Below, piece after piece: positions 17,801 through 35,900 of a stretch of DNA of 64,000 nt. Position 1 is the first letter of the stretch, and each line of letters opens with the position of its first letter. The notes under the pieces are model-generated. The model was not told the origin of the DNA. It ran no database searches and saw nothing but the letters and a program-made list of their open reading frames with translations. The DNA is from Oopsacas minuta (Eukaryota; Animalia; Porifera), in assembly GCA_024704765.1 (NCBI GenBank), contig JAKMXF010000008.1:50935-114934 (forward strand), written 5' to 3'. The translations under genes and the position numbers were made by a program.

Positions 17801-19017
17801 ATTTCAAGGGAGCATTAATTTGTTGATCTCAGACTCAGCTTCACACTGATGCTACATCTCAAGTTTCATCAGTGTGAAGCTGAGTGTGAGATTTATTACT
17901 ACCACCAAAATAAGAACGAATGTTAATATCACAGAAGTATATACTTTCTTTAAAAAAATTAGCTTATAATGTTTGCCCTTCACAGTTGTGCACGTATATA
18001 CATATGTCAGATTCCTTATATATAGGTCAACAATAGTATAGTACAGTTTTTTGTAATACAAAACCCCATACCATCATTCTAAAAAGGTCACTCTCATTAG
18101 GCCTAACAAATGACCTTTCCTCGAACATAGAAAAGCTAATACACAAAACTGTACTATAGTATAATTGAGCTATATATAAGTTATTTGATATATATATATA
18201 TATATATATCACACTTGGGCACAATGTTATACATTTGACAAGTTCAGTACAGCTGTCATAGATGAATATAATAAACCACAAAATACTATCAGATATAATA
18301 GAAACCACAAAATAGTATCGAAAATGTGCAGCTTCACGATGCATATAGCATAAAGTCTTCAAGCTAGAAAACAGTCTACTTTGGGCCTGTATGTCTAAAT
18401 TTGAGATAAGAGAGGTTATCACCAATCTGTGGTCCCCAAATACTCTTAGTGCATTTTCGCACCCTTTTCGTTTTCTCGGAATGAAACCCTGCAAGCACTG
18501 GAATAGGATTGCAAAATTATTTGAATTTCAGACATAGATTATACAAAAACATAATTTGAAAAAAGGAGGATTTGTGGCTTGGCGTGAGGATAATTATATT
18601 TGTCTAAAAGCGACAGGGTTGGCAGGCCTGGATAAATACACTTTTGTACAATACGAAGTCGGAGATCGGGATCCAATTTATTGTAACTAATATATCTCAG
18701 GTCTCGTACATTTTCGATATTGCAGATACGCGCCGTCGCATTTGGCCTACTATATGCATTGAATATTTATAAAATGTCAGAAAGAATATCTGACTGTTTT
18801 GATACCAAATATACACCATAAAGCATATTATTCTATAGGCGTTGGTGAGAAAAACCGCCACAATAACTATATCGTGAAAATATATACAGATAGTAAAATA
18901 TATATATATATATATATAGATATATAGTAGAACCTTGATATGTAAGCCTGAATTCACTGTTACTGGACATACTCTATTATAGAATGATCATATAATGAGA
19001 ACATTGTTAATGTAGTT

Positions 19018-20208
19018 CTAAAGTATTACATCTTCAGATGGCACATTGCTAAGAACCTCCAAATGCTGAAAACATAGCTCCTCTACATCATCTTTGAGCT
19101 TTAGAAAACTTTTTTGCAACATTTGCATCTTTTCTTCCCAATCATATTTATCTCGATCAATAATTTCCATAATGATGCGAGCAATATCACTTTCCTTTAC
19201 ATAATTGTTACTAGATTCATAGAAAGAATTCATTTGTACACTTGTTTCGGAATACTGAGGGATTTTGGGTATAATAGAAGTGGTCAGTATATTTTGTTGC
19301 AGGTATAAGTATGATTGATCTTGAAAACGACTTGTTTCTGAACAATTATCAATTGCAGAAGAAAACGTTCTATTTAAAGAAATTTCGTCGTTACTATTTT
19401 TCTGAATATGTTGAACGTTAGTTGGTTTTTCACTCAGAACAGTTTGCTTGAGATTGCTAATGTCAATATCAGTGAGTGAAGAATGCCTAACTAAGGATAT
19501 ATTATTTGTATCAGAACTTGAAGATTGTATAGCAAGAGAGTTTCTGTTAGATGCATTTATCACAGAGCTCGGCCGAGAAATAACAGACTTTTGAACAATA
19601 GGTTCAGTAAACTTAGAAGGAAATAACTCATTACACTGCCTGGATGGAGGTGAAACCTTTGAATTTATATTTTTTGATAGATATTTGTGAGAATGAAACC
19701 TTTGTGTGTTGACCGATTTTTTATCATCGTTAGAATACGGAACATCTGTCGAAATTGTACTTAAAATTTCAAATAAATTGGAATTCGGGGGAATTTGCGT
19801 TTCTTGAGAAATTGTATCCTTATGAACCCGAATTGTTGATTGGCCAATTGAAATTTGAACATCACTCTGAGCTTTTTTAAGTATATTTTTATGATTAACA
19901 CTATTAGAGGGAACATTAGATCTGTTCTTGGAATTAGGATCATAATAAACTTTTTCTGCAGGGACAAATATTCCATGATCAGGAGTGCATTGGAAATACC
20001 TAATCCCTTTAAAAGAACCATTATGCTTGCCTTGAGGAGCATTCAGTTCTATACCACAAAACTGACCACTTGCAAATTCGACAGTACCAAAGAATCTCAA
20101 TATCCCACGACGTACTTTGAAAGGCCCTTTATCGGAAAGTACAAGAACTGATTTACCGACAGAACGAAGGGACACAAGTTCTAAGTTTTGTAGACAAGAC
20201 TGTTCCAT
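19018..20208 (-). CDS. CAP-Gly domain protein (microtubule plus-end binding family), ~396 aa
   Basis: N-terminal CAP-Gly: RGILRFFGTVEFASGQFCGIELNAPQGKHNGSFKGIRYFQCTPDHGIFVP; Ser/Asn-rich linker; short C-terminal coiled coil; first ATG at 20208. Confidence 0.85.
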   Translation of the reverse strand: MEQSCLQNLELVSLRSVGKSVLVLSDKGPFKVRRGILRFFGTVEFASGQFCGIELNAPQGKHNGSFKGIRYFQCTPDHGIFVPAEKVYYDPNSKNRSNVPSNSVNHKNILKKAQSDVQISIGQSTIRVHKDTISQETQIPPNSNLFEILSTISTDVPYSNDDKKSVNTQRFHSHKYLSKNINSKVSPPSRQCNELFPSKFTEPIVQKSVISRPSSVINASNRNSLAIQSSSSDTNNISLVRHSSLTDIDISNLKQTVLSEKPTNVQHIQKNSNDEISLNRTFSSAIDNCSETSRFQDQSYLYLQQNILTTSIIPKIPQYSETSVQMNSFYESSNNYVKESDIARIIMEIIDRDKYDWEEKMQMLQKSFLKLKDDVEELCFQHLEVLSNVPSEDVIL

Positions 20209-20949
20209 ATGAACCAAATAGTAAATTAAAGTATAATCTAAAAGAAAGAGTATTTAACAAATTTTAGTTAAACAAAACCAAAGTTGTTAGCTTATTCGTT
20301 TATAACATAGTTCAAAGTTACATATGTAATATTTTCTTTTGGAAATTATTGGATTCCTAAAAATTGTCGATTAATTTGAAATAGTGGTCGGTTTGAATGG
20401 AATGTGAACACAAGATAGTGTTGCTAAGGTAATGTGTTAGCTGAAGCTTTAACTAACAGAATATGAGCCCTATTACTCAAATAAAACAAGTAGTTCCGCC
20501 ATAGTCAACTTCATATTCACTAATAATAACTGTCAAGCATTAAAGAAACTGTACATAATTTGAACACAACTTGAAAAGCAGCAATTTTCTCTCTAAAAAT
20601 AGCTTTACGGAACTACATGATGAGATATGATAATATAGGCGATTGAAACGCATACTTTGATACTATAATTCTATGTGCCTTAATACATACAGCTCTGGTG
20701 TATGATATTTTGAGGCACTGTATTATAGTACCATGGATATTCAATATCTATAATATTTTGAGGCAGTTGGAATCCAGAGAAATTTGTGCGATTAATTTAG
20801 TTTCAGTTTGACTTGATGATAATCTCAGTTATTACCAGATGTATATGAAGGTCTTTAGTTTTCATCTAAAATATAACCTTTTTTCAAAATGTATATTTCT
20901 GACTTTCTATATATTTATTTATTAGCTACTTTTTTTGTGAAATTTTTGC

Positions 20950-23900
20950 ATGGAGGCAAAAGAATACGACAATATTTGTAAGTTCCTGCAGGATGGCTCC
21001 ATTCTGCCACAACTACCAACATCAAATGCCAGATGGAACTTTAAGCGGAAAGCGACAAAATTCTTCATCAAAGCAGAGACACTTTACAAGGTAAATTCAA
21101 GATTTTGATATTGAATACAATCATTATTCGATTGATAAATACTTATGCCTGACTTATACATATCTCGCGGAGGAATAAGGAAGTTCATTAATATAGCGGC
21201 TCTAATAAGTCTTTTGAATTTAACTAATCTCATGAATTCAACAATTACATTGAAGATATGTTCCTTGAGAGTAAGTATTAAAAATTCGAAATTATTTTCT
21301 AGACAGTCAATATTGATGGCAACCTTTCCCAGGTTAAATTTCCAAGGAGAGAAGAATTAGCAGAGGTCCTTCATATGTTCCATGACCAGGTTGGTCATCC
21401 TGGAATGAATGCTACTTCTACTTCCATTCAAAAACATTACATGTGGAAGGGAATGCACGCGGAAATCATTGAATATGCAAGTATATTGTACATTAGACCA
21501 ATATTACCTCATTTCATACTAACTACCGTTTCTTATAAAGGTGAAAATGTGTGATGTATGTCAGCAAACTGCCTCATTGCCACCACAACCACAAAAGAAA
21601 TTACACCCGATTCCACCTCCTGACTATCCCTGGGTGCATATAGGCATGGACCTTGTGTGTGATCTTCCTATGACTACGGAAGGATATAAACATATATTAG
21701 TAACTGTTTGTTACCTAAGCAAATATGTTCTGGCAAGGCCCCCTGAAGACGAAGACTTCAGAGGAGGTTATAACGGCGCTCCAAGATATTTACCTTGAAG
21801 TAGGAGTGCCAAAAGATCGTTCAACATGATCAGGGAAAAGAATTTACCAGCAATGTAATGGTGATGTTTACTTTATACTACATATATAGGATCAAAACGT
21901 GTTGCTTTTTAGATATTTCAAGAATGCAACCGTAATCTTCAAATTGATAACAGAAGCACCCGGCTTACCATCCAATGGCTAATGGTTTAGTCGAGCCACA
22001 CAATAAAATTCTTAAAATGTGAGGAAATTGACTTAGTATTGAATTCGATTTGTTTGAGTTTTTAAACCAAGTTCATTTGATGTAGGAAATTGAACAAAAT
22101 GGGCCGTCAGACATGAAAGGAGTGGTCAATTTTTCTTAAGTCTGCCGTATTGTCCATGAACAGTACGAAAAAGAGATTTACAGGTCACACTCCGTTCAAA
22201 ATCATGTGGGGGAGGGAATCACAGTACGAGTTACTTCTCCCAGTTGTTAACAACGCAAGCTCGACACCTGAGGAAGATTTTATTGAGGAGGAAGAAGTAT
22301 TCGCACGTTTAGATCTAGATAATCTAGATGATCTAGATGATCCCTCCCTCGACACACCCGTGCTCGAAGAAGAGAGATTTAGCACATATGATTCTGCATC
22401 TCAATCAATTGCTTCAGAACAGTTGAAGCAGAAAAGTCAATATGATAAAAAAAGTGACCGGAAACAGGTGCGCTTTGCTTGTATAAATCAGTATGTACAT
22501 TATCTTACTATCTATACATGTATTGATTATAGATTATCTTCCTTTTAGGAAACCCATTGTTAAAGGAGATGTGATTATGTTTACGAATATTCCCAAGATG
22601 AAGAAAATGCCAAACACCAAAAAACAGCCCAAATACTTAGGCCCACACATGGTAGAAAGGGTATCTGGGGAAAACATCATTATTTTCATGACTGTGGCTG
22701 GAAAAAATCGAGAAAAACGCGTTCCTATTCATATAGTACGCCCATACTTTGAACGCGATATAAGTCATCTGGAACGAAAGCTGAAAAGACCATCAAAACG
22801 AAATTCAGAAGATGCAGACATCAAAAGAGTGCATACATCGGTATGACTATTCGCAATACTTACCCAAGAAACTACAAGTATTGAAAAATATATATATATT
22901 CTTTTAGATCGAGAAGGTTTATGGGTTTTCTTGCGAATCTTTATTGGACCATCTAAACAGTCTAAAGGTATTAGCACAAGACATGTACCTTTTTGCGTGT
23001 ATATTAATACATGTGGTTATAACTTTTTAGGATATCTTAGGTGGTCATATCCAAAATGGTACCTATTTGACATGTGTGCACAAAGTTCTTCACGAGATGT
23101 TTCACCAAAACCACAAGTACGTGCCAAACACATTTCTCTTTACTTTCCTGAAAGATATAAGTGAATATGATATGCTAAATATCTTTCTTATACAGTAGAA
23201 CTCGAATAAGACGTACCCGCTCGGGAAACAGAAATTAGTACGTCTTAACCGAGTGTACGTCTTATCCGAATATGTTTGCATTACAAATAATGATGACTGA
23301 TATTTTGGGATATAAGAAATGGTACGTCTTAACCGAGTGTACATCTTAAGCCGAGTACGTCTTATCCGAGTTCTACTCTATATATATACATCATTATTAT
23401 TATTATATTTACTCGTATCTTTAGAAGAGGCAAATTCGAGAGACATTATTGTGTTGGTCACATATATTTTACCCCAAGTTTGGTGATTCGTTAGCAGCCA
23501 AATACACTGAGAGTGTACTATACCCAGTCGTAAGTTTCTATTAATGTTTATGAGTTCAAGACATATTTTCTCAACTCAAAATTATTTCATTGTTCTTTTC
23601 TAAAAACACATTGAATAGGTTTTATCTCTATCATATTTTAGGCCATCGAATATCTCAATACTGTAGTTTGGGACAACATTGACAACAATAGCTCTCCTAT
23701 GCCACCTGTAATTCACGACAGTCCGCGAATATCTGTAATTAACGAAGCTTGGCAACGCCAAAAATACGAGATGTTAGAACTTATTTTTCATTCTGTTAGT
23801 AAACAACCCTCACAGGTGAATCAAACCCTATCTGATTACAGACCGTGGGAAACTGCTAATATTGATAAAGACGGAAATTGTTTCTTTTGTTGTCTATCTC

Positions 23901-24333
23901 ACATAATTACTGGAAATCAAGACAGTCATAGCGAACTGAGAAAGCTGATAGCCCACTTCATCGCTAGCCAAGGAGCAAGCAAACTAGGATGGTATTTGAA
24001 GCACAGTGGCTATACACCATTTAGTTATTTTCAAAAGGAGAGTATGGTAAATATGGATGGAGTATGGGGAGGAGATGTAGAGATAATGGCAGCATCCGCA
24101 ATTCTCCACCACCAAGTAGACATATTTGTGCCAACAACGAATATCGACGGGATAGCCAAGAGAAAGTATACCAAATTATTTCTTGGAAATTAATGAGAGC
24201 CAACGCACTGAATGAAGAAGCAATCTACGTAAAGAATTTTGATTTACATTTTGAGCCAGTAACTTCACTGGTAAACAACCCTACACCAACCTTTGGAGTC
24301 GTCGTTGACCAAATTACTCTTGATTTCGATTAG
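20950..24333 (+). pseudogene. multi-exon Ginger integrase-OTU fusion gene, frameshifted
   Basis: Exons MEAKEY...LYK | FHDQVGHPG...YMWKG | CDVC...PWVHIGMDL...HDQGKEF | YHPMANGLVE | GHTPFKIMWGR...YDKK | KYLGPH (GPY/F) | linker exons | OTU DGNCFF (Cys 23879-23881), WGGDVEI, HFEPV (His 24247-24249); donors at 21091, 21477 (GC), 21855, 22019, 22468, 22841. Confidence 0.88.
23193..23378. mobile_element. pogo/Tigger-like MITE inserted in an intron of Ginger A
   Basis: TIRs CAGTAGAACTCGAATAAGACGTAC and GAGTAGAACTCGGATAAGACGTAC (reverse complement), TA flanks, internal CGTCTTAACCGAG repeats. Confidence 0.85.
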
Positions 24334-24383
24334 CCTTTCTATTTATGAGACTCGACTCCTTCTACGTACCGTTGTGTAGGATT

Positions 24384-24410
24384 TGTGTGTGTGTGTGTGT
24401 GTGTGTGTGT
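24384..24410. repeat. (TG)n microsatellite
   Basis: About 13 perfect TG units between the OTU stop and the right TIR of Ginger A. Confidence 0.95.
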
Positions 24411-25786
24411 TTATTATATATGAGCTTGATTATCGATTAGTAAATTTATATTATTGATTCAAATAAGTTGGGGATGAAAATAACTGAAATAATGGACAAA
24501 GAGGAGTTAGTAATATGAGTTGTTATAATATATATCTGGTAATAACTGAGATTATCATCAAGTCAAACTGGAACTAAATTAATCGCACAAATTTCTATGG
24601 ATTCCAACTGCCTCAAAATATTATAGATATTGAATATCCATGGTACTATAATACAGTGCCTCAAAATATCATACAACAGCTCTATCATGCTTATTTCTTG
24701 AGATATGTGGTAATAACACATTTTAAGTCGGCCTTCTTGCGGACATATTTAACCATACTTATGAATTTAGATAAAGGGCCTAAATATCGCAGGATTAATG
24801 CAACATGCATTCCAAATTCGTAAGATATAATCTATATTTAGTATTTCTAAAGTCTTTAGAACTTTAGATTAGTTATAAGGTTATCGTTGTGGTTTCTAGA
24901 CGAAATCACTTAGATTATATTAACGAATGGTAAATCTTGCATAAAGTCAATATTTTAAATTCGTCACTATAATATCGTGTAACTATTGAGTATAGAGGTG
25001 GGGAATATCTAAAAGTAGTCTAGTAAATTATGCAATATTGATATCATATGTTGCTCAAGGTCATTTGTAAATGTGTAGCATCTATCAACTGCATCGAAAA
25101 TCTAAGAGAATCAAAAATATATATTATTGCTTAATCTAACTTGAATGAGAAGTTATCCGAAGGCCAAGTTCTAATCGTCATTCTAAAACAATAATTGGGG
25201 GTAAAAGAAGCAATAGAAAATTGAAAACATAACAAATACTTTGAGTAGTAGGGTAAGAGCCCGAAACATTTCGTCGAAATACAAAAGTCAACTTTTCGCA
25301 AAAGAAAATTCTTCCAGAGATAAAATTTCAGGAAAAATGCGAATTAATGCGCAGCAGAAAAAGCAACAACCACTGTATTGAAAATTTCGAGTAGGGCCGA
25401 GTTATGTTAATTTTTTTTGTGCAGGATCCGTTTATAGTACATATATACAATCCTAAACAAATCTAACTCCTAATCTAAATCCTCAAGTTAGTTAAGAATA
25501 CGGCTTTAGTCTTATAATCAGATGCTACTGATTTCCTAATTAGTACCTCCTTATTGTTCCATAAATTATTTTATTAGGCTCTTACAGCACAACGTTATGA
25601 GCACAGTTGCGTAGGATTTTGACCCGCAAGTAGCAATTGCAAATCAAGTAATATCAACATTTCATCCCTAGTCACATAGTATTCGTATTTATACATGTGT
25701 GACTTCCTGAATGCACACACTAACATTTACTTTATTTCTAGATTTCAACTTCAACACTTATATTTACTTTTGACATTTTTCATTAT

Positions 25787-28700
25787 GGATGCGACAGAGC
25801 ATGAAGCAATTCGTGGATACCTACAGACGAATATTATCCACCAGAAATCAAGAGTGGTCGCTACAGAAAGAAGAATTTTGTCAGAAAATGCAAGGGGATT
25901 TACTTTCAAGAGAATAAGCTAATGAAGGTATATTCTTGAATGATATCTTGATTTTTACTTATTTCCGGGACTTAATTAGAAATCTTGAGGCAACTACATA
26001 TCTGTGAGGAGGCAGATAAATAGTTGCCTCATTAAATTTGCGTACCATAGGGAGATGAGAAGGGCGAAAACACTAGGGGCTCCTCTGCCCTCCAATGTTA
26101 CCTACAACCTCTGAGTTTAACTAAAATAACTTGTAGATTTTCAGAAAGAAAAATGGCTGTGTGAAATACTTGGAGATTCCACTAGTCTCAGAAATTGAGA
26201 ACATTATCGGATTCTATCACAATGTCACTCATCCTGGAATCAACACTACCATTGATGGAATTCGAAACAAATATGATTGGAATGGCATATACAATGATGC
26301 TGGATTCTACGTGAGTACTAAATTACGTATTTCTTTCATATATGATTTTCCAAGAAAATGTGGCTGAGAACACAGACTTACTAACCCTCCCGGGATCCCT
26401 GGATGACAAATTTTGATAATCCAGGGAAATTTGCAAAAGGGGTTGGTAAGTCTGAGAACAACATGTAGTTTATAGTTTGAGGTTATTCACCTTGTATTTA
26501 TTCTACTGTATACAGCTTTAATTGTGCGATTGTAAAATTAATATTGTGCGATCTGATGATATTTAGTATACCGGTATACAATTTTATCATATGGAAATCT
26601 ATTTGTGCAGTACAACCAACCAACCAAGTATCTAACAACTAATGATCCTTGCGGTAGTTAGTAATCGGGATAGGTAGTGGGACTATTTCACATAAACATA
26701 TTTGCCAACCTGAGTGAAGAAAAAGCGGGACGGAATGCTAATTTAGCGGGACATCTGGGAAGTAGCAAATTACGTTAGACTGGACTACAAACTGACAATT
26801 AAATCATTTCCCGTTCTAGATCTGAACTTGCCATAACTGTCAAACCTCTGCTCCTCCTGAAGAACCACGGTGTCATTGTGGAATTGATCTCATATGCAAT
26901 ATGTCTCGCACTGTACTTGGATTTCAGCACATTCTTGTAATCGTGTACTACCTGAGTAAATTTGTAATTGCCCGACCACTCAAGACTAAAACTTCTAAAG
27001 AAATATTGGATTATTTACAGGAAATTTATCTCTCATTCGGTGTACCTAACATCCTCCAACATGATCAGGGAACAGAATTCTCAAGCAAGGTAACTCATAT
27101 TTTTACATACTTGAGATTAGTAATTGTAAATATACCAAAGAAATTATTCCCGATACACAATGCAACTTACTATATTGGATATACTTACGTAACATGTTGC
27201 ATTGTCAATTGTCAGCGTATTGCTTCAATATATACCCTGGTAGGAAATTGTGCGTCCTCATGGCTATATTTAGGAAACCGTGTGGAAAATTGGATTATAA
27301 TTTATGTTAAATACTAATAAATGAGAATTTCCGAATTGATGCTATAACCTTCGGATGGAAAATTTACTTTATTAATTGTTTTAACTTTCTAACTATTGTT
27401 GTACAAGACTAAATACGTGCGCGTAGTAGATTGTTATCGTTCTCTTATTTACATTCAAAATAGGAATTTCAAGAATTTCACAAAAAGATAAATGTCAACA
27501 CCAGAAGAACCACATCATACCACCCACAAAGTAACAAACTTGTTGAGTCACACAGCAAAATATTGAAAACGTGATTATTGATGCTAAATATAAATATATA
27601 TATATATATTATAAGCCTAACATACGTTTAATACACGTCGTTTATAATTAGATAGCTTTGAATTAATTTAACACTTTTACAAATAGAAAAATCAACAAGA
27701 TGCAATCTGAAGGGGACACTGAATGGACAGAGAAATTACAAACAGCAGTACTAGCAGCAAATACTCAAACCAAAATCTCTACAAGCTACACACCCTTTTA
27801 TCTCATGTTTGGGAGAGACTTTGATTCATCTAACCTTCTCAATCTTATCACTTCTCCAACTAACCCCGGATTATTAACCGAAGCTGATATCTCAGAGGCA
27901 GAAGTATCTGAAGATGAGAATATTCAAATGGATGCAAACGAACCACGCTCATTTGACTTTCCTATAATTGCTAACGAATGGATAGAAAATCTTTCTTCCA
28001 CACGTAAAGCTGACAGAATGAATGCTATTAAAAACATCAAAGCAGGTCAGAAAGTTCAAAAGAATACATATGACAGCAAAGTTAAACACAACAAGTAAGC
28101 AATAACGAAACACATTCTTGTTGTGATGTAATATATTGGAATTTCATACATCATCTCTTACTAAAATTAAATTAAATTCACTGACTGTTGTATAATCCGA
28201 TAAATATGAAATAATCTTGAATCGGAACTAATTTATTGTTTCCTCAATTATATGAATTCTTAAATTCCAAAACACTTACTTTTAGTTATATAATTAGCAA
28301 AATTACAAACTGTACATAATGGCACATTATAATTCTTTGGATATTTCTTTGTATAATCATTGTTTTAACTTTAGATTAGAATTTGTGGAAGGAGATGAAG
28401 TACTTGTACATAATATAAAGAAAGCCAAGCGACTCCCAGGAACAAAAGATGCAAAGAAATATTGGGACCATATACGATGGAGAAAGTTAAACCAAGCCAC
28501 CTAGTTGCTCGCAAAGACCCAGATAGCCAGACAACAAAATTACCAATCCACCTCTCAAGAAGATATCATTCTCGCATGAACGAAAAAAGGCAGGTTCGAA
28601 AGAAGACAGGCAAATCAAAGAAGCCCAAAAGATCTTGCAAATTCCCTTCTAGCGGTAAATATATAGCGAGACAATATTGTACTGAACTACAACTAATTGA

Positions 28701-30054
28701 CTCAGCCCATGATTAAGTACATATAAACTAGTTGTGTTCTGTATTAATTCGATTAATACGTAATAGCAATCCTACATTTCACATATTTATTATGTATTTA
28801 GATTCATTGGATAATATTTTGAACATGGATACCATGGAAGAAACATTTGAAACACTGCAACAACACTCCATCTATGAAAATATCGACTCTGAGCTACTTC
28901 AATTGAAACCTCGAATACTATCAGCCCTTGTCAATAACACCTACTTAACCCAACTACCCGTAAACTCGCTACAAAAGCTGCATCTCTAACTTCATTGAAT
29001 TTACTATATTCTTACCATCCACCCAATGAACTAAATTTTGAGATTAAGGAGAAACTTGCTGTATCAGCCGGTAGTTGGTACGCAGAATATCGTTCCTCCT
29101 ATCCTACTGAAATACCTGAAGAGACACGAAGAGATCTTGACTATCCAATTGCTGTTCTATTACCAGTAATAATTGAGTTAATATTCCCAACTGAGCAAGT
29201 TCATGAGATCATTGAAATACCAGAACAATCTATACAAATGCATCAGATCTTATCCCATATCCTAAATGGGGAGGAGAGTATAACAACATCGTGCAATCTA
29301 ACACCTGTTCTATCGACAATATATTGGCTATTCTTAGTTCGAATAAAGCAACCATCATAGACTCACTGAAGTTAATCGGAAGTACACATATTGAAGCTGA
29401 ATTCCACTACATATTCCAATTGGCCGCTAATTGTGAATTTGAGAAACTTCGAGAATATGTTGCTACTAAAATTGGACTTGAAGTTATTTATGATTCCTCA
29501 GGATTGATACGGTCTTATGATTTCTTTGGATCAGAGGGTAACATCATCAAATATTTACGAACAGAAGATTTGTGTAACGACAAATATTTCACTATCTTCC
29601 AATGCCACCAATGCACCAATATCTTCGAGACACAATCCATGATTAGTATTATAGGAGGCGTTAGTACAAACCTGGAACCATCTGTTAATCGAAGTCTCGT
29701 TCCTATTAAATGCAAGTCTTGTGGATCAACTACTGCTGTCTTAGAGAGGATATCTGGTCAATTCAAGTCAATAGCTGTCATGCTAACAATTGAAATCGGA
29801 CATCTACCCGAATTGCCAGACATTTTTGCAAGTGATATTGACAACACTTTACCATCAGTCATAACTAATGGGCACTTGATTACCAACTTGCTGGCTTTAG
29901 TATATTGAGTAATAGACACTTCTATTCAATCCTATACCAAAACGGGCAATTCTATAAATATGACGGAATGAGAGAACCAATTATCCAACTTTGGGACTGT
30001 GACACCTTCATCGGGTCACTCAATACTGTATTCTACATCTTTGCACTCTTCTGA
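25787..30054 (+). pseudogene. multi-exon Ginger integrase fused to a USP/peptidase C19-like domain, decayed
   Basis: Exons MDATEHEAIRGYL | YHNVTHPGIN...YDWNG | CHNC...GIDL...HDQGTEF | YHPQSNKLVE | SYTPFYLMFGR...YDSK | LGPYT | long last exon with SNTCSIDNIL, CHQC...CKSC, then (frameshift) HFYSILYQNGQFYKYDGM...LNTVFYI; donors at 25928, 26311, 27090, 27571, 28095, 28655. Confidence 0.8.
26373..26454. mobile_element. 82-bp MITE with 6-bp TSD
   Basis: TIRs CAGACTTACTAACCC and CAGACTTACCAACCC (reverse complement); AGAACA duplicated at 26367-26372 and 26455-26460. Confidence 0.75.
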
Positions 30055-30236
30055 CTAATTCTTATTGATTCACGACTCTTTCCATCATTCGAAAGCACTC
30101 AAAGGCAAGGTACATCGAACTTTGTGGGGACCTCTGCCCGAGGTTATTCAGGCAACGTAATCCCTATCATGGTGAGTCCAGATAATGGAAACGCGACCGG
30201 CAACAGACATCCCCAGTGGCGAATATCATCACTCTA

Positions 30237-30304
30237 CCATCTACGTATATTGCGAGAAAGGCAGCACAACTGACGAGTCTACGCCGAGACGAAATACAGC
30301 ATGG
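30237..30304 (+). ncRNA. type III hammerhead ribozyme fold
   Basis: Triplet ATA (30247-30249); stem I TTGCG/CACAA (one mismatch); core CTGACGA 30270-30276; stem II GTCT-ACGCCG-AGAC; GAAA 30291-30294; stem III GTA/TAC plus CCAT/ATGG. Confidence 0.7.
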
Positions 30305-30899
30305 AATCAGATACAAGCGAGTTTCTTATCTATTTTTATTTTTTAATCTCTCCTTGTCTGTGGCCGTTCGGGGTCCGTTAGCTCCTCACGTGTCTGTTAA
30401 TTACGATTTATTGTACGTATTCGTTTATGTTGTAGCTTAGAGTCAAATTTGGTGTGATCGCAATCACATTAAACTCGCTCCAACACTGACACATAAACAA
30501 GGTGAGGTTAACGTTAAACGTTTAGCGTTAGAGGTGGCTGTAAGGGGAAGGAAGAGGCCACCGCAGCTGACTTGTTTTGTTTATAGAAATCTAGTGTTTT
30601 CAGGAGTATGCAGCGTGTCAGAGGCTCGCGGTTTTCGCCTCAACTCTATATGTGTATCAACATTATACCAAGACTCTCGTAACAAATGCATAGTCTACGC
30701 TTGTCCAATAGATGAACATATTTCAGTGGTATATTCCTTAAAGCTTGTTAGGAAGTATAGAGAAATGGGCAAAGATGAACTCGCCTACAATTCGTACTTA
30801 AGATATTCCGAATATTCATTATCATGCTAATGCTTGTAAAATTTTTGTTATTTGATAGAATATATTGCAATATATAGATTGACATGTTAAAATATATTA

Positions 30900-33525
30900 C
30901 ACTACGTAACACAATTTTTGTTTGGCTTCAATATTTGATGTCCCCTTATGTTTTTTTGGGTCGCTGAATTCAAAAATCGTGTTAGTTTTTCCATATCATC
31001 AATGCTTTTTGACGTATTTACACTTTTTGCTTTTTCCGAACAAGTTGTGTTGTTCATTATATGCAAATTTACCTACAGCTCTTGTAATAGATTTAAACAC
31101 GTAGCGATGTGTTGATAAGTTAATTTGAACCTGAAAATCACTATAAAACAGTACATTGCTGATTACAAGTCCTAAAGAAAACAAAACGCACTCATGTTAG
31201 AGAGTTAAAATACTTCAAAAATGAACTGTTGAACGAGCTTTTCTTTTGTGACCAGAAATGTCTTCCCTTATCAAAAACCACATGTAATCGCCCATCATTG
31301 CACTGTCCCAGCGGCCCTGAAACCGTCTTTCCATTAGCTGAATATCTTGGTAAAATCTCTCGCCATGTTCCTTGCTGAAATCCCTAAATTTTCTTGAAAG
31401 AAGTCAAGATGAGAGCATAGAAAATGAAGTTTCAACGACATGCGATATCCCATCTTTTGGTGGCTTGTGATCAGAGTATTCACTATCTCTTCATAAGTAG
31501 GATCTTTGTTATTTCCTAAAAAGCCATTAACTACATCTCGAAATGCCTGCCATGCTCTTCTTTCTGTTTCGGTCATTTTATCCTCCACGGTTCTTGACTT
31601 TAACATGGTGGTAATTTGGGGGCCAACAAATATTCCTCCCTTTAGTTTATCATCTGATAATTTTGGAAACATTGCACGAATTTCTTGAAAAGATTCTCCT
31701 TCAAAATCCAAAGCTTTAACAAATTGCTCTACTAAACCCAGTTTTATATGAAGAGGTGATAGTAAAACTTTTTCCCGACCTACAAGTGGCTCTTTGATGA
31801 CATTGTACTTTCCTGGCATTAATTCTTTCTTGGCGGCCATTGAATCTTCTTGTAGTGCTCTCCATCAGCTCTGCTGTTCCACAAACAAAGAAAACATGAG
31901 TATTTGGTGTAACCACCCTGCAGTCCCAACAAAAATCCCAACATCTTAAAATCACCACAGAGCTGCCAGTTAAATTCAGCATAGTTTATTTTAAGCAGTA
32001 GTTGCTTGACATTTCATAGTCTTCTTTCATTTGTATTGAATAAGCAAGTGGAATTGACGAATATTTGTTGCCATTATGAAGTAAAACTCCTTTAAGACTT
32101 TTGGTGGAACTGTCAATAAAAAGTCGCCACTGAGAAGGGTCATGTTCAATTCCAACAGCATCAAACAAACCATTCACATCTTTGCAATAGCACAGTTCCT
32201 GTATTACATCAAAGTAAACAGAATAGTACAAGTACCTTTTCCTGTAAGCAGTTATTTTGCAATCATCACGCAGCAAATTCCACTCGCTTAATCTTGACGT
32301 CAATAGCTCTGCTGCAGATTTTGTTAGTTGCAGATCTCGTATTAAGTATCTAATTCTCTCTTAGAAGGATAATGACGATCTGCACTTGTTAATTGGAGAT
32401 ACTCCTCCTCAGCATCCGAAGTTTCACTTGATATCGAGTCTTCACATTCAGTATTAAACTCCAACTAAAATGACAAGACTAAAACATAAGATGCAGATTG
32501 TGGGTCACCCTTACAGCATATAAGCTAGCGTAGCCTTATATTATAAAACATAAAACTACTTACATTTGCTGGTGGTTTTGGAACTGGTAAAGTTTCACTA
32601 TGAGGAACAGGTGCAATGGATGATGGTATACTTGGATAAGTCAGTGCTCTTCTTCCCTTAACCTTGCGGTACTTAGCAATATTTACCATACCAAAGTAAC
32701 AATCATCATGATGGTTTTGTGGCTCTCTCCAAACTCTTGGAATAGCAAATGGTATAACTCTAGCGGAACCCCTCAACCAAGCTTCAAGATTAGATCGACA
32801 GCTGCCACAAATCACATGTGAGGCCCAGGCATTTTCCTGATCCCCAATGGACATCCCAATATACAGTCTATACGCTTCCCAATACTTAGCTTCTTTTGAT
32901 ATTTTATTTGAAACATGTTTGTCACCAACATAATATCCACAAACATAGCAAAATGAGTCAGGTGAATTCTTGCATTGTCTACTAGCCATTGCAATTTCTA
33001 AATTTTGAAAAACACTAACTTAACGTAAGAACAACCAGCAAGTTATTTCTGCCTCTCTGCGAAAGGCAGTTATACTTATGCTTATGCTAGCTGGTGGTAG
33101 CTTATAGTCTTAATATAAGTAAATACTTTCCAAGTGAAGGTATTGGATAGCAAATAAACTATACACAAGAACGAAATTTCTAAGTTTTGCAATCCTACCC
33201 CAGCCTGGAATTCTGATGCTGTTTAAGCTGTGCATTCGCAGACACTTTAAGTGCCTCCCAGAGCTTAAAAAGACAAGAGACAATGAAGGGAGTACAAAAT
33301 GTTTGTTATCTTTATTGTTATGGCACAAAAGATTTTGATTGTGATGTACATTTTTACTGGGTTGGCTAAGTGTGTAACCTGCTGATATAAATAAGCTTCC
33401 TGAAAGTTAACGATCGATGATAGAAAAAAACTAATTGCATTTTCGGAATCAGCGCCTCAAAATTATCCATAAACAATCAAAATATCAAGCCAAACAAAGA
33501 TTTCATAAAAATTTGTTACGTAGTG
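30900..33525 (-). mobile_element. Chapaev3 (CMC superfamily) DNA transposon nested in Ginger B
   Basis: Termini CACTACGTAAC(A) on both ends, 3-bp TWA TSD TTA (30897-30899 and 33526-33528). Confidence 0.88.
31150..32989 (-). pseudogene. Chapaev3 transposase pseudogene (one intron after PKPPAN)
   Basis: Chapa domain MASRQCKNSPDSFCYVCG...WREPQNHHDDCYF; WRLFIDSSTKSLKGVLLHNGN; PLHIKLGLVEQFVKAL; KLKGGIFVGPQI; MSLKLHFLCSHLDFF; frameshifts. Confidence 0.88.
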
Positions 33526-34279
33526 TTATTTATTATGAGTTAATAAATCCAATTATCAAATATCTACCACCTTCTATACAAGTAATATTATTATAAAATA
33601 TTTATATACACTGTCTATTTTTGGCATTTTGGATAATTATGCAGATTGTAAATTTGTAATACGTAGTGGGAACATAATTTACATGTTATCAAACAAATTC
33701 ACTACTTTCTAGAATCCAACTCTAAATTGACTTGTTTATTCAGTTATGTATAAGTATAGCAAGTCTAAAATTGAATTACATTACGTACATTTAGGGGTAT
33801 ATACGCAATGATAGTGCATGGAATTCGAAAAAGTCAAATGACAGAGAAGTAAGATTACTTTAGGGTCAAAATCCTACGACAATAATACATTTTGATGCAG
33901 GTCAAAATCCTACGCAACAGGCCTCATATTGTGGCATTGCCTTCGCAAAAAGATGCAGGACTCATTTTCATAAGTGAGAGAGCCTCGACCTATCACTTTT
34001 GTCCAAGTTTACTTCCCAAATATAATCCAAAAGTAAATCCTATTGGCCTTGGCCCGATTCCATTTATATATTTCTTTGGAAAACATCCCCGAGACTTCAT
34101 CTCTGCATTCTCTATTAACCGAATACTGCCGGAAAAATGTGTCATTTTATGACGTCAAAAGGCTGATGAAACCTCGATTTGGGTCCCGGAATTGGCTAAA
34201 ATAAAGCGGTAAAATAATCGTGTTTCTTTTCGTTACGAATGTAACACTTCCCCAGGATTTTTCCAATTTCACTCAGATT

Positions 34280-35900
34280 TTCTTGATCACTTTTGATTCA
34301 TCGAAGAATCACTTTTTCTTCCTGTCTTTAAATTAATTTCAATACCAAGATTGTTTGCTACCTCCTTTGCTTCAGACCATATTCTTTCACAATCAATTCT
34401 TAGATTTTGCACGTTGTATATCAGAATTCATATTACTAACTTCACTATCAACTGTAGCATTTCTTGCCTTGATGATACAGTTACAAGTATGAATAGGCGT
34501 TAAAATTTGGATCTGATTGATAACGTTAGGATTCAACGGAAGGACAAGACATATATAATAGCCCCATTCACTTCAGCTCTAGTTTTAGAAGATAAATACA
34601 GCTCCAAAAGTTCTTAAATACCTCTTCAATACCATTTAGGTTAGCTACAACGGCTTCGCACTACTTATTCTCTCTGACCATCTAGTCTCAGATTGACTAT
34701 GTAGGGATTCATTACGACAGTATTTTGGATAATTTTTCATCTTTTTGGACTGGTCTGAAATATAATATATAGATTGAATGCTGTCAAATATAGTAATTGC
34801 TTCTAAACAACACTCTGCGGAATGGGTGCCGCATAGATTCAAAGTGGGACAACCATAAGGTGATAAAATAGCAAACGAATTTACTTTAATTATATAGATT
34901 TGCATACCTTTGTATTTCCCCACCATGTTTGTACCATTATCACATCCCTGTCCTCGGCAGCCTGTTAACTTAATTTAATTTTCTTTCAAAGTAATTAATA
35001 TCAAACTGTATTCCGGATCCGGTTTTTCACTAAAATCTACAAACGTAAGCAATGTCTCTACTAATTCAATTTGATCATAATTTTATATGATATATCGAAT
35101 CATGAAAGCAGTTTGGTCATCATGAGAAGAATCAGGTGTTGGATCAACCATTATTATGGAAGAATATTTGCACTTGTCCTCATTAGTATACGAACAAACT
35201 ATTTTCTATAAATTGAGATGATTTAAATCTTAGTTCATGTTCTCTCCAAGACAAAGAATTATTTTTGTGATTGTGTCTCCTTTCATGCCCTGGAATTTTA
35301 TCACTTAATTCCTCCAATTTAACAGATGAAGGCCTTTCTTTTGAGAAGATAATGCGATGACTTGAAATCTACACCCTTACTAAATAGACATCATGGGAAG
35401 CTAAATTGTAAGTCTATTTTCCTGCTCTATACCAACCAATCTCTCTAAGTTATATCTCCATTATGAATTCTATACTTAAAATTGAAATTGGAAATGCTTG
35501 ATTACGACTATCTTCAAGAAACTTATCCAGTAAAGGGATATGACTGTCGAATACACACCTTTCATTAGTTTCATTCGTTAGTGTGGTAAATATTCTAATA
35601 GCGAGTCCACTAACGAGATCAGATATCTTCATTTGCAGAAGGCAGTGATATAATATTTGTTCGCAGTAATGTTTCTGTTGCTCGAATATCATCTTCAAAA
35701 TTCAGTGTTATCATTGGAAATATTGCAACTGCAAGTGACATTGACTTAGAGTCAACAGGTAAATTTTAAAGATTTGAAGAATCTGCGAATTGAGGCTTGA
35801 AAGATGTAATATCTATTTCAAATATCGAGATTGTGACTGTGACTGAGGTTACAGTGGTTTACCGTGTACAATTTCGAGGAAGGCCATAATGTATTTAGAG
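34280..35900 (-). mobile_element. hAT (Tip100/ZMYM-like) transposase relic
   Basis: Fragments YSSIIMVDPTPDSSHDDQTAFMIRY, MVGKYKGMQ...LNLCG.HSAECC, SLHSQSETRWSERI; heavily degraded. Confidence 0.72.

Follow-up and report, generated by a model that had tools for sequence, protein, structure and literature searches.

Ginger1 transposons, as defined by Bao, Kapitonov and Jurka in 2010, carry OTU or Ulp1 domains as tails of their transposase, and a role of the ubiquitin/SUMO pathway in transposition was proposed with that definition (PMC2836005). Attached proteases of this kind are known from other mobile DNA as well: Helitrons and herpesviruses have been argued to benefit from deubiquitinase activity, which different classes of enzyme could supply (Erven et al. 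2022, PMC9741609), and the HELIANO study reports OTU, UCH, Ulp1 and tegument-like (VTD) domains in Helitron-like elements (PMC11417382). Here we describe two neighbouring transposons at positions 20696-33919 of a 64,000-nucleotide stretch of the genome of the glass sponge Oopsacas minuta (contig JAKMXF010000008.1, positions 50,935 to 114,934); this whole stretch is called the window below. Element 1 (20696-24678, plus strand) is a degenerate Ginger1-type DNA transposon that combines an integrase with an OTU exon, and element 2 (25605-33919, plus strand), also Ginger1-type, combines an integrase with a USP-fold exon. The interval very probably represents two independent, now inactive Ginger1-type insertions with a six-exon integrase and a swapped clan-CA protease tail, OTU in one and USP-fold in the other. 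Modular tails of Ginger1 are already published; the USP-fold tail is a third type, apparently unreported for Ginger in the papers searched. A literature search, with Repbase reports outside its range, turned up no account of a Ginger transposase that ends in a USP-fold domain.

The likeness to Ginger1 runs through most of the architecture and includes a Gypsy-integrase-like transposase with an H2C2 finger, a DDE core, a GPY/F motif and transposase introns, inverted ends starting TGTNR, a 4-bp target duplication and a C-terminal clan-CA cysteine protease, the OTU of element 1 being one of the two published types. Differences are seen in element 2, whose tail is USP-fold and neither OTU nor Ulp1, and whose terminal repeat is only about 24 nt long with sub-terminal copies, as opposed to the published 40-270 bp. 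Helitron-like elements (PMC11417382, PMC9741609) are comparable in that one superfamily recruits different classes of deubiquitinases or ubiquitin-like proteases; however, they are rolling-circle elements with a RepHel protein and do not belong to the integrase-type cut-and-paste transposons, and the protease lies up- or downstream of RepHel, often in a separate open reading frame (ORF). Mutator-like elements with Ulp1, cited in PMC2836005, are likewise DDE transposons with an attached ubiquitin-like protease, but their transposase belongs to another superfamily and their protease to another family (C48).

The two elements lie 926 bp apart on the plus strand, in agreement with the sequence-only reading of the window, which had described them as same-strand neighbours. 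The related inverted-repeat starts noted there are also real, since both families begin with TGTTG and generate 4-bp GNNC target duplications (GGCC, GTAC, GGTC, GATC, GGAC, GCTC and GACC were seen), although the strings quoted for them correspond to the right ends in reverse complement, and what stands at the left in the window is TGGTG... and AGTTG.... In addition, a family-specific sub-terminal motif is repeated in each of the two, far more often than expected by chance. The same integrase exon structure, another element of that reading, holds because block boundaries relative to the public gene model P0273 (LOD99_1838) coincide in both elements, at residues 106/107, about 215, 246/247 and 382. 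The window's assembly comprises 61.46 Mb in 365 contigs. It should be noted that all searches were run per single exon or single ORF and the trees were built per exon block; the joined-exon view is taken solely from P0273. A further proposed similarity, a weakly similar linker, did not survive. The two linkers match with E = 5.1 in tblastn, at 25% identity over 20 aa, which is chance level. The string quoted for element 1 lies outside the stretch of its ORF that is conserved in related OTU families, and the motif of element 2 (R/K-D-Y-P...LLP) recurs in many homologues as a conserved portion of the USP exon.

The integrases themselves are close. The core exons of the two elements are 58% identical over 67 aa (tblastn E = 3e-28), and the following blocks are 60-67% identical. 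Pfam detects Integrase_H2C2 in each of the two elements and rve in element 2; sister families and the database protein P0165 show the two domains clearly, the catalytic D, D and E regions could be aligned, and a small exon with the catalytic Glu region is present in both elements. The GPY/F motif reads LGPY in element 2, LGPH in element 1 and WIGPYP in intronless families, and a conserved N-terminal block, MD..EY....YL......P followed by basic residues, was found; the N-terminal motif published for Ginger1 is YPYY. Among named relatives, the nearest are fish proteins that are GIN1-like or carry Ulp1, and Ephydatia proteins that carry OTU. The 109-column tree, built without a Repbase Ginger1 sequence, leaves deep nodes unresolved. 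The closest database proteins overall are hypothetical proteins of O. minuta.

The position of element 2 among these integrases is evidence for an exchange of tails. In the core-exon tree (109 columns; related loci were read as matches ±1.5 kb, and integrase cores of other OTU families are left out) element 1 with its OTU and element 2 with its USP-fold tail form one clade with support of 100/100, the other clades being the intronless USP families (95/94), the fish Ulp1/GIN1-like proteins (100/98) and the Ephydatia OTU proteins (100/100). Forcing all USP-bearers together costs 56.6 log-likelihood units and is rejected by the approximately unbiased (AU) test (p = 5.18e-5). The GPY/F tree (68 columns) places element 2 with at least four OTU-bearing families (100/99) and apart from the intronless USP families, and in the middle block the OTU-bearing C59 family is nearest to it, with 50% identity. 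Since the integrase lineage of element 2 sits among OTU-bearing lineages, the tail was replaced at least once within the clade of elements 1 and 2. The same C-terminal position is occupied by Ulp1 in the fish relatives and by OTU in the Ephydatia relatives. The sequence-only reading had proposed a swappable last-exon slot that was filled repeatedly; the exchange is supported by the trees and the AU test, which show only one replacement within the clade.

One could argue that there is no swappable slot at all, but one ancient split among Ginger elements that the different tails reflect, and that the integrases now look close through later recombination or conversion of the integrase region. The use of single exons for the trees and the position of element 2 in the intron-bearing clade, which is an unresolved polytomy, speak in favour of such a history. 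We nevertheless consider it improbable: the core, middle and GPY/F blocks each connect element 2 with OTU-bearing families, as does every shared intron position, and an exchange of the whole 5' two-thirds would formally be the same event as an exchange of the tail.

The nature of the exchanged tail in element 2 had to be read from its structure. Pfam gave no match for its last exon, either with the window ORFs or with an intact 430-aa exon, and neither phmmer nor profile searches against the PDB returned anything significant. A full-library phmmer search with this exon returned 148 homologues, of which 52 were taken into an alignment, and AlphaFold run on this alignment produced a model with a predicted local distance difference test score (pLDDT) of 92.2 and a predicted template modelling score (pTM) of 0.88; the pLDDT of a single-sequence run was 34. 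The Foldseek matches listed for the model (E about 1e-8) are USP-family deubiquitinases, including USP46, USP18, USP1, Ubp8, USP35, USP12 and USPL1, with one exception discussed below. In VIA-align comparisons with USPs, 211-240 residues could be aligned across positions 7-280 of the model; the Z values were 13.4-15.7 and the identity to solved USPs just 9-15%. Language-model neighbours of the domain include UCH clusters.

Conservation among the 52 homologues points in the same direction. Where the positions are covered, Asn30 and Thr31 are kept in 24 of 24 sequences each, Cys32 in 22 of 23, His236 in 27 of 31 and Asp251 in 21 of 25, and the four Cys of a zinc ribbon are kept in 34-39 of 41-46 homologues. 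A Cys at the N-terminus of a helix and a His at the start of a strand is the arrangement found in USPs; in the model, a helix starts with Cys32 and a strand with His236, and all three candidates, Asp251 included, fall within the secondary-structure elements expected for a catalytic Cys, His and Asp. The structural matches, the conserved residues and the placement of Cys32 and His236 together support the USP-like assignment at the level of fold and motif. With the USP/UBP family (MEROPS C19, Pfam UCH) and USPL1 (C98) the domain shares the whole-domain fold (Z 13-16) and the order of elements: an N-T-C box, a CxxC...CxxC zinc ribbon, a Y.L.G...H box, Y.YD and a final hydrophobic FY.L strand. Unlike them, it has no significant sequence match in Pfam or the PDB, it is compact (about 265 aa), and this type of domain has so far been seen solely on, or next to, Ginger-type integrases. 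In element 2, the last exon is thus modelled as a USP-fold domain that has diverged strongly and that carries a zinc ribbon and a conserved candidate Cys/His/Asp set. The two tails had been described before as unrelated deubiquitinase classes, OTU and USP-like. This is true of the OTU by a significant Pfam match and of the USP by fold, but USP membership by sequence profile did not follow.

A fold of this kind leaves more than one function to consider. The tail may be an isopeptidase for SUMO or another ubiquitin-like protein, in which case the three Ginger tails would not all be directed at ubiquitin. SUMO is equally possible as a substrate because the best structural matches include USPL1 (Z 14.0-14.3, with the highest identity, 14-15%), a USP-fold enzyme that acts as a SUMO isopeptidase. 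The best sub-threshold Pfam match is to Peptidase_C98, and Ulp1, a SUMO protease, holds the same position in fish relatives (PMC2836005). However, the Z value of USPL1 is tied within 1-2 units with those of the ubiquitin-specific USP30, USP35, USP46 and CYLD, fold similarity is uninformative on specificity, and the OTU tails in sister elements usually point to ubiquitin. On balance we regard a tail directed at SUMO or another ubiquitin-like protein as rather unlikely.

Two further roles can be treated together, namely that the tail cuts the transposase polyprotein itself, in the manner of some viral papain-like proteases, or that it is a silent ubiquitin-binding module like the pseudo-USP of PAN2. 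The PAN2 pseudo-ubiquitin-hydrolase, at rank 50, is the sole non-deubiquitinase among the Foldseek matches listed; the tail sequence is too divergent for Pfam, and a weak, non-significant profile match in the PDB is to a coronavirus papain-like protease chain (E = 2.8). Yet almost every homologue that covers these positions retains the candidate Cys, His and Asp as well as the Asn that precedes the Cys, which would be needless in a silent module, and no conserved cleavage motif was seen between integrase and tail. Both roles seem very unlikely.

That the USP-fold domain belongs to the transposase is shown by its occurrence in one open frame with the integrase, both in other sponge families and in database proteins. 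Single frames running from integrase into USP-fold domain were found in other Oopsacas families, with lengths of 642 aa (L032) and 594 aa (L037). In P0165, which is 897 aa long, H2C2 lies at residues 57-113, rve at 136-225 and the USP-fold domain at 581-894, where hhalign reports a probability of 100% (E = 4.7e-71). In element 2 itself, integrase and protease exon are joined by an inferred GT-AG intron of 147 nt in phase 1 (28655-28801, plus strand), and the junction between exons 6 and 7 in the public model P0273 uses exactly this GT-AG (...CKFPSS-D-SLDD...). The domain is thus a genuine part of the transposase.

Neither protease exon is an isolated insertion: both are multi-copy, and the genome holds about 100 places matching each tail. 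Purifying selection, whose lack within the families would have spoken against a maintained module, is seen between families and is ambiguous within them. The ratio of non-synonymous to synonymous substitution rates (dN/dS) between USP families is 0.18-0.19, at a dS that is near saturation (about 1.4-1.5). Comparisons inside families give 0.39-0.78 for copies of the USP type, 0.32-0.6 in the larger OTU family and about 1.2-1.4 in the small family of element 1, which looks dead; these within-family values (0.39-1.4) mix selection with neutral decay after insertion. The outcomes named beforehand as refuting the sequence-only reading were thus not observed.

The nearly saturated dS and the high dN/dS of the element 1 family both weigh against the interpretation of the locus as two Ginger1-type insertions with exchanged protease tails, and there are other points on this side. 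Each tree was built from one exon, with 109 and 68 columns respectively, and with deep nodes unresolved the trees give neither the direction of the swap nor its donor. The USP group for the AU test was named after pairwise identities had already hinted at the result. Pfam UCH is not significant in the tail homologues (the best value is E = 0.04, in two of the 52 members), and Peptidase_C98 reaches 0.0024 in one member. Protease activity and substrate are predictions from fold and motifs, and the catalytic residues are candidates. The target duplications also differ from those of described Ginger1 elements, being GNNC here and CCGG or CCGT in published ones, so that just GGCC resembles the published sites.

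Both elements encode an H2C2/DDE/GPY-F transposase spread over six exons, to which the final exon adds a clan-CA cysteine protease, and a single C-terminal position in Ginger1 relatives accommodates an OTU, Ulp1 or USP-fold domain. Replacement of the tail probably took place via recombination between Ginger families in the same genome. The recurrence of three protease folds at a single position makes it probable that the transposase depends on an isopeptidase for ubiquitin or a ubiquitin-like protein being attached to it. Its most likely use would be to strip ubiquitin or SUMO from the transposase itself, or from chromatin or repair factors at the site of excision or integration. As to the purpose, shielding the transposase from degradation and undoing chromatin ubiquitin marks, as put forward in the sequence-only reading, are both speculation, and similar ideas are already in print (PMC2836005, PMC9741609). 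A broader proposal, which we offer tentatively, is that the last exon represents an unrecognised family of USP-fold isopeptidases, invisible to Pfam, with more than 100 homologues, carried by Ginger-type integrase transposons and exchanged with OTU tails between families sharing a genome. Taken with the Ulp1 tails, this would make the removal of ubiquitin or a ubiquitin-like modifier an obligatory step, linked to the transposase, of integrase-type cut-and-paste transposition, and the protease folds would be convergent answers to this need.

The family of element 2 numbers at least 35 copies, which share 89-95% identity with the window copy; the latter is collinear with 11 others at 90-95% identity. 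Eight complete copies, 5.85-6.0 kb in length, have TGTTG...CAACA ends and perfect 4-bp GNNC duplications. In the window, the element's own sequence comprises 25605-30899 and 33526-33919. An inverted-repeat search placed the terminal repeat (plus strand) at 25605-25628 on the left and 33896-33919 on the right, with a sub-terminal copy at 33864-33878; the sub-terminal motif has three matches against 0.08 expected. The six integrase exons, identified on the plus strand by tblastn of P0273 and by Pfam Integrase_H2C2 and rve, lie at about 25785-25933, 26137-26313, 26826-27104, 27464-27571, 27670-28095 and 28373-28654. The last exon (28802-30054, plus strand) begins with a conserved linker and continues into the USP-fold domain at about 29250-30054. 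In the window this exon has at least three frame breaks, near 28960, 29237 and 29905; it is intact, as a 430-aa ORF, at L014:4699-5988, L018:4695-5984 and L021:4696-5985.

The left junction of the window copy is mutated and reads GCAC|A, where GGCC|T is predicted from a palindromic target. The flanks (25596-25605 and 33920-33928) suggest that this target was TATGA-GGCC-TCATA, and GCACA in place of the expected GGCCT amounts to three changes in five bases, right at the transposon end. Element 2 is moreover interrupted by a nested element of 2626 bp on the minus strand (30900-33525), with inverted ends of about 20 nt (CACTACGTAAC...) and a TTA duplication. It is unrelated to element 2 and missing from all other copies, and Pfam recognises none of its three ORFs, which run on the minus strand and are 105-168 aa long. 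Its ends and 3-bp duplication recall CACTA/EnSpm-type elements, and we leave it unclassified.

The family of element 1 is small. The window copy is the sole full-length one found, and the rest are truncated or internally deleted. Its inverted ends are 152 nt long and 97% complementary (left 20696-20846, right 24528-24678, plus strand), with two copies of ATATTTTGAGGCA in each; motifs of the ATATTTTGAGGCA type have four sub-terminal matches in the window, against 0.19 expected by chance. The target-site duplication GCTC, unstranded and read directly, lies at 20692-20695 and 24679-24682, and other copies of the family show the GNNC duplications GGTC, GACC and GGCC. On the plus strand, the first half of the H2C2 zinc finger is encoded by an exon at 21315-21476 (Pfam Integrase_H2C2, E = 3.1e-8), which aligns to residues 54-106 of P0273. 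The integrase core exon at 21541-21870 holds the CxxC and the first two acidic residues and carries 1-bp insertions at about 21739 and 21811 relative to the copy on C166, so that the frame passes from A to B to C. A small exon with the catalytic Glu (YHP.ANGLVE) was placed at 21966-22016 (plus strand) by tblastn with an intronless sponge integrase, and the middle and GPY/F exons follow at about 22087-22480 and 22547-22846, also on the plus strand, with the LGPH motif aligned. Between the GPY/F and OTU exons, a candidate short extra exon at 23067-23190 (plus strand) shows about 40% conservation among related families with OTU, eight other loci being matched by residues 87-150 of the C166 ORF.

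The OTU protease exon (23640-24333, plus strand) has DGNCFF near its Cys and HFEPV near its His, and a frameshift at about 24106-24128 splits the two motifs between two frames. Pfam OTU (PF02338) is matched by the window copy with E = 1.7e-8 (35.5 bits) and by an intact copy with E = 9e-9 (36.3 bits), the cut-off being 23.3 bits. The intact OTU ORF, of 228 aa, lies at L002:3430-4113 (C166); its Cys box reads DKDRNCFF and is accompanied by HFEPV, and the window and C126 copies read DGNCFF. Element 1 also contains a miniature inverted-repeat transposable element (MITE) of about 186-195 bp at 23190-23385 (unstranded), with 31-nt inverted ends, which is missing from the C166 copy, where a gap of 186 bp is seen. 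Its copies across the genome number in the dozens, and their scatter and 94-98% identity indicate that the MITE was recently active. Both window copies are dead: frameshifts are present in both, element 1 harbours the MITE, and element 2 the nested element and the mutated left junction.

Several related loci should be mentioned beside element 1. On C166, ORFs with a hAT-like C-terminal dimerisation motif (L002:1-1345) adjoin the 5'-truncated element 1 copy, whose truncation was probably caused by another transposon. Element 1-like loci on C21, C344 and C316 are truncated, and no C-terminal domain could be assigned to them. A more distant OTU, 35% identical, is found in a 549-aa frame at five near-identical loci (C277:345792, C188:514159, C199:110256, C310:454235 and C323:223643), which are probably a different family of OTU-bearing mobile elements.

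The surroundings are those of a eukaryotic genome, with about 35% G+C in the window and short, intron-split ORFs. Just upstream of element 1, a 399-aa ORF on the minus strand (19018-20217) contains a CAP-Gly domain (Pfam E = 2e-22) and is probably an exon of a host gene. ORFs for reverse transcriptase or RNase H were found in neither element, and Rfam returned no hammerhead or other family for window positions 19000-35000 (E up to 0.1) or for the intact element 2 copies L021, L014 and L018 (E up to 1).

Three cysteine-protease folds are now recorded at one position of one transposase lineage, and in the clade of elements 1 and 2 the tail was replaced between integrases whose core exons are still 58% identical over 67 aa. 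Such a comparison makes a stronger case than was available so far for an attached de-modifying activity that matters to the element instead of riding along as a passenger. The role of ubiquitin or SUMO removal in integrase-type transposition has been a question since 2010 and bears on retroviral and Gypsy integrases too; the compact USP-fold domain of about 265 aa, of which intact natural copies exist, is a candidate for biochemistry in this respect. Profile libraries miss this branch of USP-fold proteins, and the sponge proteins in question are consequently annotated as hypothetical at present.

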